Sequence record: NC_048182.1
Length of the DNA: 64,000 bases
Strand: one strand, 5' to 3'
Shown here: piece after piece, positions 13,961 through 64,000 of the stretch
Layout of the letters: each line of letters starts with the position of its first letter
How positions within the stretch are numbered: the stretch's first letter is position 1
Notes under the pieces: model-generated
The model's input: the letters and a program-made list of their open reading frames with translations, nothing else
Told to the model about the DNA's origin: nothing
The model's database searches: none
Program-made: the position numbers and the translations under genes

Positions 13961-13970
13961 GTGAACATAA

Positions 13971-14001
13971 CCCCTACCCCTCCTTTCGGAGCGGGTAGGG
14001 G
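13971..14001. terminator. Conserved palindromic hairpin
   Basis: cccctaccc-ctcc-tttc-ggag-c-gggtagggg between convergent genes. Confidence 0.75.
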
Positions 14002-14022
14002 AATATGCTTGTTTATTTCTTT

Positions 14023-33676: not shown

Positions 33677-33682
33677 TCATCT

Positions 33683-33711
33683 CCCTTACCCTTCCGAAAG
33701 GAGGGTAAGGG
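33683..33711 (+). terminator. Conserved palindromic hairpin
   Basis: cccttaccc-t-tcc-gaaa-gga-gggtaaggg followed by T-rich sequence. Confidence 0.75.
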
Positions 33712-33787
33712 TTATGTTTTATTTTCTCAGATTAGTTTCCATTATACGTTAACTAATACAAATCTTTTATTTGAAAAGGAAAGAACA

Positions 33788-55663: not shown

Positions 55664-55675
55664 TAAAGCATAACC

Positions 55676-55706
55676 CCCCTACCCCTCCTCACGGAGTGGG
55701 TAGGGG
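55676..55706. terminator. Conserved palindromic hairpin
   Basis: cccctaccc-ctcc-tcac-ggag-t-gggtagggg between convergent genes. Confidence 0.75.
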
Positions 55707-55716
55707 AATATGTTTG

Positions 55717-58047
55717 TTAGAAACGATTGAATCGACCAAAGCGAGATTTCTTGGCTCTTGCATCAACAAGACGTTTTTGTCTTTCTTGTTTAGCGTTCTC
55801 AATAATTTCATCAATAGTAATTGTCTTACGCATTTCTTTAGGGATCAGCGTAGACAGTTTACGAACCTCTGCTTCAATACGATTAGCGATGGTTGCATTA
55901 TCGGTATTGAGAAGTTCTTTGGTCAGACTGTTGATGCGCTCTTTAATACGAATGAACATATCTAACTGGGCTTTGGTATACTGGGGTTCATCGCCATTGT
56001 CTTTCAGAGTTTTAACCTCTGTCATGGTAGCACCCTGTGGCACTCCATAATAAGACTTGTTATAACCAAGCTTAATAAACCAGTAAGTCAGTAACCAAGC
56101 AATGACCAAGTCATCGTGTCCTTTTGACGCGTGGTCAATACGTCCATCTTTATCAACTTCCAATCCGATCAGTTCATCGATAAGTAACGGATACCCAATC
56201 CCTGCACCAGTAAGGCTAACAGCTTCAAAGATAAAGCCATACATCTCACGACGAGTTTGTGGGGTGGTTGCAAATCCAAACTTACCTTTATATTTGAGGT
56301 AGAACTCTTTTGTTCTGTATTTGAAGTTAACTTCTTTTACATCACGGAGTTCTTTCTCATAACGAATTGGATATTGATAGATGTCATTGAACAGTCGTTT
56401 AAATGGATCAATACCATAAGCAGGCAGAGTAATAAGCAGTCGCTCAATCATCATTGCTGCACGGTTACGTTCAATAACGAGCATGGAGTTAGGGATGCGT
56501 ATCAGGAGCTCTTTAACCACGTCTGTAACGTCATCAAGGAATGCAAGAGGATAACGTCCTGTCCCAATTACCTCACCGCTCTTAAGACGTCTGAGGACCA
56601 ATGTACAGGCATCTCGGTCGTTTGCATCTGAGGTATCCATCCCCATCAGTATAAACTCATCTTCAGCGTTAATGTAGAAGTTAAGTTCTTCTTCTGAAAT
56701 GAACCAGTCAACAAACAAGCCAGTATCAAGAATCTCTTCGTTTCTTAAGAAAGATTTCTTACTCCCTGCTAAAGACTCACGGGTGAAGTCGTCGAAGAGT
56801 TTGTTCATCCCTTCTTCGGTCCACATCATCAACAAGTCGATCTTAGCCTTAGACCAAGACAGACCCAGTTTATCCATGGTCTCTTTAACCCAGTTAGGAC
56901 CAAAGCCTAATTGGAGGTGAGTAAACATCATACCAATGCGAGGAGAGGTAGTCTTAACTGGGGATGCTTTAATGCAACGCTGAACCAAATGAGACTCAGA
57001 GAAGCTATCGTAGAACGATTCACGCCACTCAGTAGAGTTCTTAAAGTCATCGTGCATGTAACGACCTTCCGCCTTCAGGATCGAGTTAGGCGTTGTCGCT
57101 TTGGCTGTAAAGTAAGGAATACCTTTTTCACGTGCTTCTTTCTGCGCCGTCAGTGTTGCTGGCGCTGCACCGTTTACGATGTTTTCAATGTACTTCGTCC
57201 AAGCAGGTTCGTCGTACAAGAGAACTTCAAAGGTAGAACCACGAGCCACGTTCTCTGCGCCGTCCTCACCACCAGACGGTACACGAACTTCAAAGGTGTT
57301 CTTTTTGTCAGCTCCGAATGCTTCATATGAAAGAATATTACCAGCATCCTTATCCTTATATGTCATGTTACACATGTAATAAGGGAGTGCCGATCGTATC
57401 TTCTTAATTGCTTCCACGAACTGCATACGGTTACTTGCGGCCAGGGTAATCAGACCAGTACGGAAACCACGACCTGTCAAATACTGCATAATAAATGTCA
57501 GTACCTGCATCCCTACTGTTTTACCTGACTGACGAGGCATCAAGATAGTAGTAGGGAGGTGGTTCAAGCAACACCAGATAAAACTGATTACAGCACGGTT
57601 AGCACGGAAGCGTGAGGAGCCGTTGACTTTCACTACTTCACGAATTGCATACCAGATGTTCTCATTACACTCGTTGAGAATCATCATCTGTTGTTCATCC
57701 GTCAGATTAGGATCCCATGGGTCAAGATCTTTAATCAACGGGTTGTTAATTTGTAAGAGGAAGTAATAGTTCTTGATCCCCATCTGTCTGAACAGTTCAG
57801 CAGTACGGAGGAACGACTTATTACTTGTCTCTAAATGAACCCCCGCCCCATAACGGGAGAAGTCCTTTAAGAAGCGCACGGTCTTCAGAGTCCATAAGCT
57901 GTCTTCTTCATAGTGAGCCACGATTCGTTGATCGAGATCATCTAAAAGAGTTCGCTTATCCTTATCGTCCATAAGGTATTCTGGAAGAGCCGCCGCTTTA
58001 CCTCCTAAATGCGTTAGGAGCTTCTTAGCGAGGCTTAACTTGTCCAT
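55717..58047 (-). CDS. terL: Terminase large subunit
   Basis: Walker A MPRQSGKT, Walker B VLLYDE, nuclease motifs MGMDTS and GHDDLVIA. Confidence 0.93.
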   Translation of the reverse strand: MDKLSLAKKLLTHLGGKAAALPEYLMDDKDKRTLLDDLDQRIVAHYEEDSLWTLKTVRFLKDFSRYGAGVHLETSNKSFLRTAELFRQMGIKNYYFLLQINNPLIKDLDPWDPNLTDEQQMMILNECNENIWYAIREVVKVNGSSRFRANRAVISFIWCCLNHLPTTILMPRQSGKTVGMQVLTFIMQYLTGRGFRTGLITLAASNRMQFVEAIKKIRSALPYYMCNMTYKDKDAGNILSYEAFGADKKNTFEVRVPSGGEDGAENVARGSTFEVLLYDEPAWTKYIENIVNGAAPATLTAQKEAREKGIPYFTAKATTPNSILKAEGRYMHDDFKNSTEWRESFYDSFSESHLVQRCIKASPVKTTSPRIGMMFTHLQLGFGPNWVKETMDKLGLSWSKAKIDLLMMWTEEGMNKLFDDFTRESLAGSKKSFLRNEEILDTGLFVDWFISEEELNFYINAEDEFILMGMDTSDANDRDACTLVLRRLKSGEVIGTGRYPLAFLDDVTDVVKELLIRIPNSMLVIERNRAAMMIERLLITLPAYGIDPFKRLFNDIYQYPIRYEKELRDVKEVNFKYRTKEFYLKYKGKFGFATTPQTRREMYGFIFEAVSLTGAGIGYPLLIDELIGLEVDKDGRIDHASKGHDDLVIAWLLTYWFIKLGYNKSYYGVPQGATMTEVKTLKDNGDEPQYTKAQLDMFIRIKERINSLTKELLNTDNATIANRIEAEVRKLSTLIPKEMRKTITIDEIIENAKQERQKRLVDARAKKSRFGRFNRF

Positions 58048-58153: not shown

Positions 58154-58182
58154 CCCTACCCACTCCGAAAGGAGGGGTAGGG
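58154..58182 (-). terminator. Conserved palindromic hairpin (reverse orientation)
   Basis: ccctaccc-a-ctcc-gaaa-ggag-gggtaggg; a UUUC loop on the minus strand. Confidence 0.7.
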
Positions 58183-58198
58183 TTATCTTTAATTTATT

Positions 58199-60285: not shown

Positions 60286-61130
60286 TACCGTTTCCTTGGA
60301 ACCATCATTTTGAGAGAATCGGCTTTACCTTTCGGATCTGAATAAGCAAAGATCTTTTTCATCTCATTATAATACATATCTTTGAAAGACTGCCCTGCAT
60401 CTGAGTAACCCTGTATTTCATCCTGGATGTCTTCAACAGTTACGCCAAAACGAGACACAGCTTCTTGCATCCCACGGCGACAGTGTTTGTAGATATACGC
60501 TTTGGTACCCCATTCCACCCACTCAGCAAACTTGTCATGAGATTTTGGATGAAGGGTAGTAAAGTGATCATCAAAAGCCAATACGACTTTAGCGATCATA
60601 TTAAACAATGCAGAACCTGCATCGCGGATAATAAAGGAGTTATTACCCGTCATGGTAATGTTGGTAAAGGTACGCTGAACGTTACCATCATCAAGACCGT
60701 TGATCAGACGACTTAATGCGTTGTTCATTTGACCTGTACCGCAGGTAGCATAACCGGCAAAATTATTGCCGTTCATAATAGCCCGGTTGATATTTCCAGG
60801 ATAGACTTCGATAACCTGCATGATACGACGACCACCGGTTAAGAAGTCTGGTACGTTAACGGCAATTACACCGCCTGCAAGATTTTCAATTCGAGCATAA
60901 CTCAAATCGACAACCTCGGTAGTACCGCCAGCGACGTCCATTAAAGGCGCACACATCTTCATGATGACCTTTTCACGAATCCCCTGATCGATACTAAATT
61001 CAGTATTCACGGGTTGCCAAACTGATCCATAGCCGTTGTTGGGATTCTCAAAAGCGAGCTTCAACATGTACGGCGATATATCAGATGGACCATCCTGAAT
61101 ATAGTTGATGGCAAAATCTATAGCGCTCAT
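60285..61130 (-). CDS. Probable virion structural protein
   Basis: 281 aa, translationally coupled to the downstream gene. Confidence 0.65.
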   Translation of the reverse strand: MSAIDFAINYIQDGPSDISPYMLKLAFENPNNGYGSVWQPVNTEFSIDQGIREKVIMKMCAPLMDVAGGTTEVVDLSYARIENLAGGVIAVNVPDFLTGGRRIMQVIEVYPGNINRAIMNGNNFAGYATCGTGQMNNALSRLINGLDDGNVQRTFTNITMTGNNSFIIRDAGSALFNMIAKVVLAFDDHFTTLHPKSHDKFAEWVEWGTKAYIYKHCRRGMQEAVSRFGVTVEDIQDEIQGYSDAGQSFKDMYYNEMKKIFAYSDPKGKADSLKMMVPRKR

Positions 61131-61173
61131 TTATAATACCCTTGCAAGGAAGTTACAAAACATTCAGCATAAA

Positions 61174-61205
61174 CCCCCTACCCCGCCCGAAGGTGAGGTA
61201 GGGGG
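61174..61205 (-). terminator. Conserved-family hairpin with a cUUCGg loop ending the ncRNA block
   Basis: Minus strand ccccctacc-uc-acc-UUCG-ggc-gg-gguaggggg-uuu; G.U pairs form only on the minus strand. Confidence 0.75.
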
Positions 61206-61216
61206 AGTACGATCTT

Positions 61217-61312
61217 GCATCCGACGGTTCCTAAAGGTCTGGAATCCTTTATATCTGGAACCCGTTTCGTCCACTTGTTTTACATCGCCGGACTCGTCAG
61301 GGTTTGCGATGC
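61217..61312 (-). ncRNA. Type I hammerhead ribozyme
   Basis: Minus strand: CUGACGA (61300-61294), stem II GUCC/GGAC, GAAA (61268-61265), stem III CGG(G)UUCC/GGAACCG, GUC triplet (61225-61223), stem I GCAU..CC/GG-AUGC. Confidence 0.88.
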
Positions 61313-61319
61313 TACTCCA

Positions 61320-61890
61320 CATGTAGTAGGGTGAGCTACCCGATATCGTGCTGGTACCCTGGAAGGGACCTATTAGTCAAGATGAACGTCAAAGTTCAAG
61401 ACTGTATCGCAACTGTCGTTCGGGTAACTCAAGAGGTGCAGTAAGGCGTAAAGTAATCCGACGTGACATGCCTGTCTCGGTTTCTCTAGCTTACTGCAGA
61501 ATGGGTGCAACGTTCCCAACTCTGATAGATGTTTCTTTTTATAACCGCCCTGGAAGGTGTTCGGGTTCTACCTTCATAGATAAGACGAGCATCACCTCGC
61601 CATTGCATTCAGCTTATGCTACAGGACATTCTATCAGCGCGTCGCTGCGTCGCCGAGGCTAACCAGGGCAACACCCACCAGAGGCTACTTACAGTAGCGG
61701 ACTTATAAGCCGCCGTTCACCGTCTGGATTTTCCTGAGTAGTAGCGTACTCAGGTTTTGCCTTCTCCAGCACTCGGGGAGGTGAGACCCCAAACCAGAGA
61801 AGGTCTTACAACCAATCTCAGTCGACTGGCAGACCCCTGTTATTAGCCCGCATGGCATATAACCCAGATCTACACTTCCCGACACATCGG
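61320..61890 (-). ncRNA. Large structured ncRNA candidate (about 570 nt)
   Basis: No credible ORF. At least ten helices, including 11-bp and 9-bp multiloop closers and an 8-bp pseudoknot. Wobble pairs favour the minus strand. Confidence 0.7.
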
Positions 61891-61893
61891 TTG

Positions 61894-62166
61894 TTATGCT
61901 GTTGCCATTTCCGGAGCATTGTCCGGATTAGCCAGCGTTTTCACCAAACCTTCGTAACCGCCTTTAATAAAGACGTCATCAACGAAGATCTGAGGAACAG
62001 TACGAACCACTTCACCGCAGATCTCAGACAGCTTTTCGCCATTGATACCTGCTTCAACGATGTTGATGTACTCAATTTCCAGACCTTTTTCTTCGGCCAG
62101 GGCTTTAGCACGATCACACCATGGGCAATTTGGTTTGCCATAGATCTTAACAACTTTGGTTTCCAT
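61894..62166 (-). CDS. Glutaredoxin
   Basis: CPWC active site, TVPQIF and GGY. Confidence 0.93.
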   Translation of the reverse strand: METKVVKIYGKPNCPWCDRAKALAEEKGLEIEYINIVEAGINGEKLSEICGEVVRTVPQIFVDDVFIKGGYEGLVKTLANPDNAPEMATA

Positions 62167-62174
62167 TATAGTTC

Positions 62175-62300
62175 CTAACCAATAGTAATGTGAATAAAAC
62201 TGAACAGCCAGATCAGACCTTCAATGGTGGCCCAGCCAGCTATTGCGCAGATCAGACCGAAAATTACGATCATTCCTGTCCAGGATCCGGAGAACCACAT
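62175..62300 (-). CDS. Small membrane protein (41 aa), absent from the ORF track
   Basis: AAGGTG RBS; MWFSGSWTGMIVIFGLICAIAGWATIEGLIWLFSFIHITIG. Confidence 0.65.
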   Translation of the reverse strand: MWFSGSWTGMIVIFGLICAIAGWATIEGLIWLFSFIHITIG

Positions 62301-62320
62301 AGGTCACCTTTTGAAGTTGT

Positions 62321-62514
62321 AGAGGATCTCGAGAGTTGAACTCAACTTATCATTCAGTACAGTTGAAGTAGAGTTGTCTATCTTCACCGCTAATGGGTTC
62401 ACGACTAAGTCGCTAGAGCATAACTGAACTTGTGTCCCACGACACGACCCTCATTGATTAGGCTCGAGGTCAGGACTTTAACCTAACTACTGCGACGTCT
62501 TCAATGACATCCTC
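62321..62514 (-). ncRNA. tRNA-like structured element (about 190 nt)
   Basis: T-arm UUGAG-UUCAACU-CUCGA followed by GAUCCUC, which can pair with GAGGAU at 62514; several internal hairpins. Confidence 0.35.
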
Positions 62515-62620
62515 GAAGTTGGAATTACACACCGAGCAACCGATAGGTGGGAAGTGGATCCCAGGTATGCACTTTAGGCCCTGGCCTGTTGTACCCCGGT
62601 TGTACTCGATATGTAATATT

Positions 62621-62706
62621 TGGTGGTAGAGGAAGGATTTGAACCTACGAAGCCCGAAGGCAACAGATTTACAGTCTGCTCTCGTTGACCGCTTGAGTAC
62701 TCTACC
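62621..62706 (-). tRNA. trnY: tRNA-Tyr (GTA), class II, CCA encoded
   Basis: GGTAGAG acceptor, anticodon arm GCAGA-CTGTAAA-TCTGT, long variable arm, GTTCAAATC T-loop, ends ACCA. Confidence 0.96.
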
Positions 62707-62714
62707 TTAATACT

Positions 62715-62858
62715 TTACTTTCCCTTCAGTGCTTTCTCTAAAGGGCTTGAAACTTTCTTAGCGAACACATTGTTAGGTTGTTTCTTGTAAATCGCCTGGT
62801 TAACTAGAGTTTTAGTTAATTGGGGATTGAGATGAGGAAACCCACTTGGTGTTCTCAT
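62715..62858 (-). CDS. Small basic protein (47 aa), absent from the ORF track
   Basis: ATGA overlap with the upstream stop; MRTPSGFPHL...EKALKGK. Confidence 0.5.
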   Translation of the reverse strand: MRTPSGFPHLNPQLTKTLVNQAIYKKQPNNVFAKKVSSPLEKALKGK

Positions 62859-63364
62859 TTGGCAGGTCCGGTATGTTGATTACCAGTACCGCTGTGGATG
62901 TTCACATGAGGGGAATTAATCTTAAAGTTACCGCCTACCATATGAACCGTCCCGGCATTCACATCAACGGTAACATCTTTCTTACCATTGATTACTGAAA
63001 CTGTTACACCAGTCTCGCTGATGATATACGCTTCCACATCAGAAGTAATATATTCAATGCGAGTCTCTGGATCATCGACGTAGCGTTTGTGAATTAACAC
63101 AGCTACACAGTTATGCGGAAGATTCAAATCTCCGGCAAACTCGCCAATCTGTTTTGTTTCCGGACAGACTCGATACAGATCCCAGATATCCCATATATAC
63201 TTAACTGATTCATGGCTTAATACTGGGAGAACCCCTTTACCGTTCAACCATTCTTCTCTGATTTTATTAACCGCATCAACGGTTTCATCTGCAGATAAGA
63301 AAGTAGCATTCAGATCTAAAGTCGACGGGATTTGATTTGGGGTACGAATGGTTTTCAATAACAT
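62855..63364 (-). CDS. Hypothetical phage protein
   Basis: 169 aa with the C-terminal motif EAYIISETGVTVSVIN. Confidence 0.7.
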   Translation of the reverse strand: MLLKTIRTPNQIPSTLDLNATFLSADETVDAVNKIREEWLNGKGVLPVLSHESVKYIWDIWDLYRVCPETKQIGEFAGDLNLPHNCVAVLIHKRYVDDPETRIEYITSDVEAYIISETGVTVSVINGKKDVTVDVNAGTVHMVGGNFKINSPHVNIHSGTGNQHTGPAK

Positions 63365-63410
63365 GCTTTATCTCACTTAGTTTTGTTAGTAGGAGGTTTA
63401 GCTGTTTGTG

Positions 63411-63776
63411 AATAACCCGCTTTTCATTTAAGGAAGCGCTGATCCCGAAGGAGGGCTGCGGGTTACTATTGTGAGCCGCTATTGCTAAGCTCAGTTCTAT
63501 CACAGTCGTAACAGAACAAGGTGCCGAACTTAATCGGTTGCTTTGCGACTATCTTCATCAATTTAACCTTAAGAGACACCGTGGTCAGTTTAAGGCAGAA
63601 GAGGGAGTCTATCCAAATTGTTAATGGCTTATATTATCCATGATCGCCACTTCATGGAAAATCCCTTATATACCTAGGCAACCATTAGGTTGATTTGGAT
63701 TCCAAGGGGAGGTACCTCGGGTAGCTCTGTAGTCGAGCAGTCGATCCATGGCAAAATTTACTTTGACTACAGAGCT
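63411..63776 (-). ncRNA. Second structured RNA candidate (about 370 nt)
   Basis: Intergenic region tiled by helices: a 12-bp perfect stem, an 8-bp multiloop stem, a 10-bp hairpin with G.U pairs and a UUCG hairpin. Confidence 0.55.
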
Positions 63777-63812
63777 TTGTTCTTAACAGAATATAGTAAT
63801 CAGCTTAAATTA

Positions 63813-64000
63813 TTAAGCTGGGATGTATTCCACCCAATCATGACCCATCTGATCGCTAACCGAAGGAACCCAGGTATTTACCGTACCGGTGACCGTGTTA
63901 ACAATAACGAAGAAAGGTTCGATGTATGGCTGTACGCCATTTGGGAGTTCTACATCAGTGGCACGGACAGAACCATGTAACTGGACATAAAGTCCTTTAC
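63813..64000 (-). CDS. DUF2829/Tad2-like protein, 5'-truncated by the window edge
   Basis: GKGLYVQL...PYIEPFFVIVNT...TWVPSVSDQMGHDWVEY matches the recalled DUF2829 pattern NGKGM.V.L...PW.PS..D..A.DW. Confidence 0.7.
   Translation of the reverse strand, partial: KGLYVQLHGSVRATDVELPNGVQPYIEPFFVIVNTVTGTVNTWVPSVSDQMGHDWVEYIPA

Follow-up and report, generated by a model that had tools for sequence, protein, structure and literature searches.

A large structured RNA joined to a putative hammerhead ribozyme at the end of a tRNA island in Edwardsiella jumbo phage pEt-SU

Organization of the locus

The window analyzed here, 64,000 nucleotides of NC_048182.1, belongs to Edwardsiella phage pEt-SU, a jumbo phage of the phiKZ/OBP type. 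Annotated coding sequences occupy 909 of the 2640 nt (34%) between 61174 and 63813, against an ORF coverage of about 95% elsewhere in the window, in agreement with an earlier sequence-only reading, which had described a mostly non-coding stretch in a gene-dense genome. All eight elements listed in that reading are present, all of them on the minus strand, as is every feature of the unit, although several details had to be corrected (Table 1). Two ORFs were missing from its list, those encoding gp284 and a 41-aa protein. Inside the stretch, none of the phage-type terminators was found, and the absence of an obvious intervening terminator had likewise been noted before.

Table 1. Features of the unit and its surroundings in the pEt-SU window.
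Feature	Coordinates	Strand	Evidence or remarks
Tad2-like (DUF2829) gp283, 3' part	63813..64000	-	full gene 63813-64103, cut by the window end
Conserved AT-rich box, 22-23 nt, candidate promoter	63777..63799	-	conservation; promoter role putative
Leader hairpin, ~54 nt	63723..63776	-	covariation, fold
gp284, 169-aa protein, conserved unit member	62855..63364	-	ORF
tRNA-Tyr (anticodon GTA)	62621..62706	-	ARAGORN; Rfam RF00005, 53 bits
Module X, long stem with three-way junction cap	62523..62618	-	fold z = -4.1
tRNA-like remnant, 58 nt	62461..62518	-	comparison with the 106-nt cloverleaf of relatives
Module Y, preceding the 41-aa ORF and overlapping a 32-aa ORF	62306..62453	-	conservation
41-aa hydrophobic ORF, annotated gp237	62175..62300	-	ORF, annotation
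Glutaredoxin gene	61894..62166	-	Pfam PF00462, E = 2.5e-14
Large structured non-coding RNA body, ~570 nt	61323..61893	-	homology, covariation, fold
Large RNA, central module with GGGUG/CACCC closure	61503..61676	-	alignment
Putative type I hammerhead ribozyme	61219..61311	-	invariant core, covarying stems
Hammerhead pseudoknot, 5-6 bp	61311-61306 with loop II 61288-61283	-	
Hammerhead stem I	61304-61301 with 61222-61219	-	
Hammerhead core	61300-61294 and 61268-61266	-	
Hammerhead stem II	61293-61290 with 61272-61269	-	
Hammerhead stem III	61265-61262 with 61227-61224, plus distal extension	-	
Predicted self-cleavage site, after C of GUC	61222..61223	-	position relative to conserved core and stems; hammerhead chemistry
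Intrinsic terminator hairpin with T-tract	61169..61205	-	kept in all relatives; hairpin 61174-61205 plus T-tract

The likely start of the unit is formed by the conserved box together with the leader hairpin (63723-63799), and its end by the phage-type terminator. Hairpins of the same family stand at gene ends elsewhere in the window (approximately 2064-2106, 13964-14010, 33681-33719, 55666-55717, and 58154-58190). Since a single promoter-like box and a single terminator bound all the elements, and since the large RNA starts a few bases past the glutaredoxin stop codon, leaving no room for a promoter of its own, co-transcription is plausible, and the whole stretch is probably one transcript.

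Upstream of the box lies the gene for gp283, which by its Pfam PF11195 domain would be a member of the Tad2 (Thoeris anti-defence 2) family, with scores of 32 bits for the portion within the window and 53 bits for the full protein (cut-off, 25). A Tad2-like gene also lies upstream of a gp284 homologue in five further contigs. The sequence-only reading was right about the presence of this gene, but it falls outside the range proposed for the unit and upstream of the conserved box, and it is perhaps not a part of the unit.

The box occurs once in the window (chance expectation, 0 matches) and is kept where the tRNA region begins in Yubaba, N1M2, Survivor, OBP, and five metagenome contigs, as well as weakly in Aeromonas phage D6. 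A general promoter motif test of the window showed no enrichment of TTTGTAA/TATGTAA or of the box core. The leader hairpin, which corresponds to the "structured RNA" of the earlier list, carries GCCAUGG in its apical loop, and its stems covary over nine phages and contigs. A long leader hairpin is predicted in eight sequences despite differing stem sequences, and Survivor aligns to the element; the whole spacer holding the box and the hairpin has a fold z of -4.4.

The 169-aa protein gp284 had no match in Pfam, PHROG, NCBIfam, or PDB, its AlphaFold model (pLDDT 66, low confidence) gave no fold match, and none of its 15 homologues has a Pfam domain. Downstream of tRNA-Tyr, module X is 93% identical to its counterpart in N1M2 and is present also in AH04, Survivor, and contigs L015 and L016. 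The tRNA-like remnant consists of an acceptor-like stem, one hairpin, and a T-arm-like hairpin, without the long anticodon-like arm seen in relatives, and neither ARAGORN nor the Rfam tRNA model (RF00005) calls it. The 106-nt cloverleaf elements were found in N1M2, SXP01, AH04, and L015, with a CCA end in AH04 and L015. Module Y is 90% identical in contig L017 and 83% in L015. Family searches, including Pfam, gave no match for gp237. For the glutaredoxin, GrxA ranks best among NCBIfam models, yet the score is under that model's own cut-off.

The large structured RNA

The region between the glutaredoxin gene and the hammerhead is homologous in 15 loci. RNAalifold applied to the alignment predicted 74 pairs, with compensatory changes in 43. 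Among the 58 pairs that do not belong to the hammerhead, 90% of cells are paired, with a covariation score of 0.46 as compared with 0.24 in shuffles (maximum 0.27) and 0.10-0.16 in slid controls; as 15 loci from a single phage clade are a small family, shared ancestry supplies part of this signal. The minimum free energy of the fold corresponds to z = -4.9. A protein-coding reading was rejected, as the longest stop-free stretches change frame and place in every member and no conserved ORF exists.

The central module is closed by covarying helices (61676-61672/61507-61503 and 61644-61641/61511-61508). Its sequence is nearly invariant in seven relatives, reduced in two, and replaced in OBP. The most sequence-conserved module is thus dispensable in some members, an observation that was counted against the explanation preferred below.

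An Rfam search with the large RNA returned zero families at E<=10, the RNA being absent from Rfam 15; the literature search found no counterpart, and comparison with E. coli genomes revealed no similarity to any of them. The large RNA is a new, previously undescribed family. Short motifs had raised the suspicion of an RNase P-like RNA, which was abandoned after no Rfam RNase P model matched any of 12 sequences (E<=10 or E<=5). Introns of groups I and II were rejected as well: their models had no match in the same number of sequences at these thresholds, and, as the flanks differ between relatives, there is no exon pair. The pEt-SU record seemed to contain the RNA a second time, but that place proved to be the shared terminator hairpin only.

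The hammerhead ribozyme

As judged from the alignment, the predicted hammerhead at the 3' side of the large RNA appears genuine. The catalytic-core columns are invariant in 13 aligned sequences, with the exception of one free position, and the core was also found in contigs L036 and L037, both of which match the family's own covariance model. The catalytic nucleotides flanking stem II are in place, as are the A-U pair and a non-G unpaired nucleotide at the predicted cut. In the alignment 86-91% of cells pair and eight pairs are changed on both sides; the covariation score is 0.25-0.38, compared with 0.10-0.13 in shuffles (reached by 0 of 500), and slid controls were low. All four pairs of stem I show double changes; stem II has one covarying and three invariant pairs, while stem III combines an invariant proximal part with a covarying extension. 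The pseudoknot between stem I and loop II comprises 5 bp, three of them covarying, and was recovered independently by RNAalifold. The topology is that of a hammerhead in which loops cap stems II and III, while stem I is open.

With the family's own covariance model, members score 74-114 bits. The Rfam model RF00163 (gathering threshold 34 bits) has no match in the window at E<=10 and no member reaches its threshold, which speaks against the main explanation; the best score in the family, 23.7 bits (contig L017), is a weak but independent sign in favor of a hammerhead. In pEt-SU itself stem I beside the core is short, consisting of 2 bp, a mismatch, and 1 bp, which was counted against the main explanation.

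Hammerheads stabilized by a pseudoknot are common and are also known from phages (PMC3088659). The type I pseudoknot hammerheads (Perreault et al., 2011, PMC3088659) share with the pEt-SU element the core, three stems, an open stem I, the GUC triplet, a 5-6 bp pseudoknot between stem I and loop II, and a phage context. The pEt-SU family differs from them in falling under the RF00163 threshold, in a long, three-part stem III with a conserved YUCCAR loop, and in that the ribozyme is not intergenic but continues a ~570-nt structured RNA at its 3' end. A second hammerhead, suspected on the 5' side in SXP01, was discarded, as the motif lies within a real 131-aa ORF matching phrog_4301.

Distribution and synteny in related phages

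Besides pEt-SU, no fewer than 14 genomes and contigs of related jumbo phages carry the pair of large RNA and hammerhead. The absence of the hammerhead beside the RNA in relatives had been named beforehand as telling against the sequence-only reading; the two occur together in 15 of 15 loci. Culturable phages carrying the RNA are pEt-SU, OBP, N1M2, Kc263, AH04, and Serratia phages. The order is fixed: a tRNA/glutaredoxin cluster is followed by the large RNA, the hammerhead, and then the DUF7484 virion gene. The large RNA starts directly after an upstream stop codon or tRNA-Met, the latter in Yubaba, N1M2, OBP, and contig L023; its upstream neighbor varies, being glutaredoxin, tRNA-Met, or other ORFs.

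In most relatives the predicted cut is followed by a second structured RNA of ~270 nt, the 3' domain. This domain has been lost in pEt-SU, so that its hammerhead would remove the terminator only. The cut would take off ~55 nt from an RNA already ended by a terminator, so that a benefit of cutting is doubtful, a point counted against the main explanation.

Close Aeromonas relatives with the same synteny possess neither the large RNA nor the hammerhead; hence, the RNA is not essential to the phage lifestyle. Candidate relatives lacking the hammerhead, obtained by scanning viral contigs with a pattern of the 5' domain, were chance matches only (L029-L034), and an exact 18-mer scan matched pEt-SU itself alone.

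Comparison with known large phage RNAs

GOLLD and ROOL are phage RNAs found near tRNA islands, one GOLLD being located downstream of tRNA-Met (PMC12286853, PMC5737381). The large RNA of pEt-SU shares the features of this type, as it exceeds 500 nt, has many covarying helices, and is encoded by a phage beside tRNA islands. Like GOLLD (RF01998), it is ornate and combines a conserved with a variable part, and its position in Yubaba, N1M2, OBP, and L023 parallels that of the GOLLD studied downstream of tRNA-Met. However, a hammerhead is not reported for GOLLD in the literature covered, and the phages carrying the present RNA are proteobacterial jumbo phages. With ROOL (RF03087) it has in common the size (ROOL averages 581 nt), multiple junctions, pseudoknots, and the phage and tRNA context, but the sequence and fold are different, and the RNA described here has a predicted self-cleaving 3' domain. 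The GOLLD and ROOL models gave no match in the window at E<=10 or in 11 relatives at E<=5. By analogy, the large RNA appears to be of the same sort as GOLLD and ROOL while not being related to them in sequence.

Retrozymes and viroid-like circular RNAs resemble the locus in being non-coding RNAs of 600-1000 nt with a hammerhead; however, they need cuts at both ends of the unit, whereas pEt-SU has one ribozyme at a fixed chromosomal position and no unit repeat was seen. The tRNA region of phage T4 encodes stable non-tRNA RNAs that are co-transcribed with tRNAs and excised from a common precursor, an arrangement like that of the present unit, although in T4 the RNAs are small and host enzymes, not a ribozyme, do the cutting.

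Proposed model and alternative explanations

The explanation we favor, and hold to be fairly probable, is a single unit at the end of the tRNA island that yields a new GOLLD/ROOL-like large RNA whose 3' end is made by the hammerhead. The transcript would run through the box and leader hairpin, gp284, tRNA-Tyr, the tRNA-derived modules, the 41-aa ORF, glutaredoxin, the ~570-nt RNA, the hammerhead, and the terminator. Pairing between loop II and the strand that extends stem I on its 5' side would help the ribozyme fold, and the ribozyme, acting in cis, would cut after GUC at 61223. The large RNA would keep the ribozyme as its 3' domain and end in a 2',3'-cyclic phosphate, while the terminator hairpin and U-tail would leave with a 5'-OH; in most relatives, the one cut would free the second structured RNA. 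The hammerhead probably cuts in vivo and the cut RNA is probably stable. The proposal of the sequence-only reading that the hammerhead sets a 3' end agrees well with these data, as the ribozyme appears real and stands at the position needed to set the large RNA's 3' end. With regard to function, context and analogy allow a guess: the RNA may act in trans with the translation or tRNA apparatus, or serve as an RNA scaffold.

A bolder and fairly unlikely version of this proposal is that the ~570-nt RNA represents a new functional class in nucleus-forming jumbo phages of the OBP/pEt-SU type, a ribozyme or RNA-only assembly acting on tRNAs or ribosomes and matured by its own hammerhead, which ancestrally would have split the precursor into two cooperating RNAs.

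Rather unlikely, in our opinion, is the possibility that the RNA and hammerhead, instead of acting in trans, form a giant cis-acting 3' UTR, responsible for stability, processing, or export of the tRNA/glutaredoxin transcript and for its insulation from the late virion operon. Such a role would fit an RNA that begins immediately past the preceding stop codon or tRNA, without space for a promoter, and always lies between the tRNA island and the DUF7484 structural genes. However, the RNA stays while its upstream neighbor changes, the terminator already insulates the units, and a multi-junction fold of this length with near-invariant loops far exceeds the needs of known 3' stabilizers.

More doubtful is a large ribozyme or RNA-only assembly of nucleus-forming phages, serving, for example, RNA processing without host enzymes, with the hammerhead as a maturation step. 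The size, junctions, pseudoknots, and invariant unpaired nucleotides are consistent with this, catalysis or cage formation is frequent among large complex RNAs of bacteria (PMC5737381, PMC12286853), and OBP encodes chimallin (PMC10299810); yet RNase P and intron models did not match, no substrate is known, and the Aeromonas phages lacking the RNA argue against an essential part in the lifestyle.

The sequence-only reading had suggested that RtcB might join the 5'-OH and cyclic-phosphate ends of the large RNA into a circle that would counter host defence as a decoy or sponge, which we regard as very unlikely. The hammerhead would indeed yield the cyclic phosphate and a Tad2-like anti-defence gene adjoins the unit, but that gene lies upstream of the conserved box. 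Moreover, circularization by RtcB requires that the RNA begin with a 5'-OH, which RNase-type 5' processing would not leave. Nothing able to generate such an end was found: the window contains one hammerhead and no other self-cleaving ribozyme family at E<=10. No conserved helix links the 5' and 3' ends, and in most relatives the 5'-OH product would be a separate RNA, the 3' domain. The least credible explanation sees the region as a relic in decay, whether a degenerate intron, a mobile element, or a dead gene, in which a hammerhead-like motif arose by chance. It could appeal to erosion in the region, as both the 3' domain and, in the tRNA-like element, the long arm have disappeared from pEt-SU, but is contradicted by compensatory changes over 13 aligned sequences, the invariant catalytic core, fixed synteny, and the lack of a conserved ORF.

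Significance

To our knowledge, very few ornate RNAs of conserved structure above 500 nt exist in bacteria and phages, and every one discovered up to now has opened up new biochemistry or architecture. The carriers of the pEt-SU-type RNA include culturable phages. According to one account (PMC12908238), nucleus-forming jumbo phages keep transcription apart from translation; it may be speculated that the access of host RNA-processing enzymes to transcripts in the phage nucleus is in question. The built-in hammerhead would be a rare bacterial case with an obvious and testable job, the maturation of one specific large RNA, and the GOLLD/ROOL-type theme of a large RNA beside phage tRNAs would now extend to nucleus-forming jumbo phages.

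Genomic context of the RNA region

The genome of Edwardsiella phage pEt-SU (NC_048182) comprises 276,734 bp, and the window is 100% identical to it (subtracting 186,000 from a record position gives the window position). OBP, EL and further jumbo phages of the phiKZ type encode relatives of its DUF7484 virion protein, OBP being among the phages listed as chimallin-encoding (PMC10299810). All features considered here lie on the minus strand (table below), in a stretch where annotated coding sequence occupies 34%, versus approximately 95% ORF cover in the remaining window. The gp284 protein is a conserved member of the unit for which no recognisable family or fold was found.

Features of the RNA region of pEt-SU, in 5'-to-3' order, and the corresponding element of relatives
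Feature	Position	Strand	Remark
Tad2-like gene gp283	63813-64103	-	first; cut by window end
Spacer	between gp283 and gp284	-	448 nt
Box	63777-63799	-	unique in window
Long hairpin	63723-63776	-	follows the box
gp284	62855-63364	-	169 aa
tRNA-Tyr	62621-62706	-	
Spacer	between tRNA-Tyr and 41-aa ORF	-	320 nt
Cloverleaf remnant	62461-62518	-	58 nt
Conserved segment	62306-62453	-	150 nt, upstream of 41-aa ORF
41-aa ORF	62175-62300	-	
Glutaredoxin gene	61894-62166	-	
Gene-free stretch	61131-61893	-	763 nt
Large RNA	61323-61893	-	
Hammerhead	61219-61311	-	
Terminator hairpin (T-tract follows)	61174-61205	-	hairpin-family copy 61166-61207
DUF7484 gene	start at 61130	-	last
106-nt cloverleaf-like RNA	L002 (N1M2):3729-3834		
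106-nt cloverleaf-like RNA	L006 (SXP01):2279-2384		
106-nt cloverleaf-like RNA	L010 (AH04):1026-1131		
106-nt cloverleaf-like RNA	L015:285-390		

At the downstream end, the terminator belongs to a hairpin family whose near-identical, G+C-rich members are followed by TTTAT and lie at gene ends (~2064-2106, 13964-14010, 33681-33719, 55666-55717, 58154-58190 and 61166-61207), several of them between convergent genes; a copy in OBP matches at 90%. These look like the standard terminators of the phage. At the upstream end, the box and its hairpin are conserved: in at least nine phages or contigs they open the tRNA region, and the hairpin stems covary. The Tad2-like gene of pEt-SU lies upstream of the box. 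Since early promoters of phages of this kind are conserved AT-rich ~10-mers (PMC7598289), the box is a promoter candidate and may serve the region. Only a few bases at most separate the upstream stop codon from the structured part of the large RNA; in several relatives the structured part instead starts about ten bases past a tRNA-Met. There is therefore no space for a separate promoter.

Three independent metagenomic Logan contigs, L035 (96 kb), L038 (66 kb) and L039 (45 kb), each stop within ~300 nt past the gp284 homolog, right at the start of the tRNA and RNA region; these ends may be assembly breaks on RNA genes or a genome end.

The element previously read as a tRNA-like RNA is a remnant of a 106-nt cloverleaf-like element that in relatives has a very long anticodon-like arm and a 9-nt apical loop that is conserved; in two phages its CCA end is encoded as well. 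It is annotated as tRNA in no record, gives no match to the Rfam tRNA model, and was not called by ARAGORN in L015. Two further conserved modules flank the remnant. The segment 62306-62453, overlapping a 32-aa ORF, is 90% identical to the distantly related uncultivated phage L017, far above its surroundings.

A large structured RNA

Homologues of the ~570 nt that separate the glutaredoxin stop codon from the hammerhead occur in the isolates Survivor (76% full-length identity to pEt-SU), Yubaba, Sureiya, N1M2, Kc263, SXP01, OBP and AH04, as well as in four uncultivated viral genomes and three metagenome contigs. RNAalifold on 13 sequences gave 74 pairs, with compensatory changes in 43. By our own count, the 58 pairs outside the hammerhead show 90% pairing and a covariation score of 0.46, versus 0.24 in shuffled controls (at most 0.27) and 0.10-0.16 with slid partners. 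Seven helices are robust to alignment, and the pEt-SU fold is 4.9 standard deviations better than shuffles. No conserved reading frame was found, no member matched an Rfam family, and nothing similar was detected in E. coli genomes. Seven members share a central module (61503-61676) of nearly invariant sequence; two carry a reduced form and OBP a replacement, which makes the module a dispensable add-on.

Two annotated hypothetical proteins overlapping the large RNA and hammerhead, PQB72_gp252 of N1M2 (L002 4479-4991) and PQD71_gp258 of Kc263 (L005 4008-4199), are probably spurious; the annotated start of the N1M2 DUF7484 gene seems too late. In SXP01 an unannotated 131-aa ORF (L006:2877-3272) separates the large RNA from the glutaredoxin gene; it matches phrog_4301, is missing from pEt-SU and, judged by eye, may carry a kinase-like motif.

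Aeromonas phages pAEv1810, PS1, D6 and ZPAH34 share the synteny of tRNAs, glutaredoxin, a 0.8-1.1-kb gap and DUF7484. Neither the large RNA nor a hammerhead is present in the gap, no Rfam family matches it, and it may encode a different, unrecognised RNA.

A type I hammerhead ribozyme

An Rfam scan of the window yielded only a tRNA, with no hammerhead call even at E<=10; one family member gave a sub-threshold RF00163 match (23.7 bits). The hammerhead core is fully conserved in the spacer that holds it, aligned from six phages. A model built from eight copies scored 74-114 bits on the 13 members first collected and 97 bits on each of two later ones, with a single copy in the 64-kb window. Across the alignment of 13 sequences, pairing holds in 86% of cells, eight pairs have changes on both sides, and the covariation score is 0.254, versus 0.097 for shuffles (none of 500 reached it) and 0.04-0.08 for slid controls. 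All four stem I pairs covary, as do the three parts of the long stem III arm, which ends in a conserved YUCCAR loop, and a 5-bp pseudoknot between the 5' extension of stem I and loop II. Pseudoknot-stabilised hammerheads are common, with phage examples reported (PMC3088659). With loops closing stems II and III, and stem I open, the ribozyme is of type I; cleavage is predicted to follow GUC, separating 61223 from 61222. Beside the core, stem I of pEt-SU is weak, and the downstream strand could alternatively pair with the pseudoknot strand.

The extended pattern also occurs in unrelated contigs lacking the large RNA: L020/L022 (a 56-kb viral contig), L021, L025, L026, L027 (a Clostridia MAG) and L028 (Mycolicibacterium neoaurum). 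They score 19-32 bits with the family-built model, Rfam at E<=1 calls no hammerhead in L022, L025 or L026, and they appear to be additional type I hammerheads that have gone uncalled.

Proposed maturation and significance

In 10 of the 13 aligned members (including contig L023, which ends inside it), the cleavage site is separated from the terminator by a conserved ~270-nt RNA; this suggests that ancestrally the ribozyme would have split a single precursor into two structured RNAs. This RNA is absent from pEt-SU, Survivor, SXP01 and the later-added L036 and L037. In pEt-SU the cut would remove only the terminator hairpin and U-tail, leaving the ribozyme as the 3' domain of the large RNA, and by hammerhead chemistry the new 3' end would be a 2',3'-cyclic phosphate. 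Circularisation of the large RNA, raised in the sequence-only reading, is unsupported, given that a single ribozyme is present, nothing visible would supply a 5'-OH at the 5' end, and no helix connects the two ends.

Literature searches on hammerheads in jumbo phages yielded nothing relevant, and broader ones found nothing on the large RNA. It resembles GOLLD and ROOL in size and context (PMC12286853; PMC5737381) but is a member of neither, and context is the sole guide to its function. The overall anatomy speaks for a new phage RNA, large and structured, that carries its own hammerhead to mature its 3' end.
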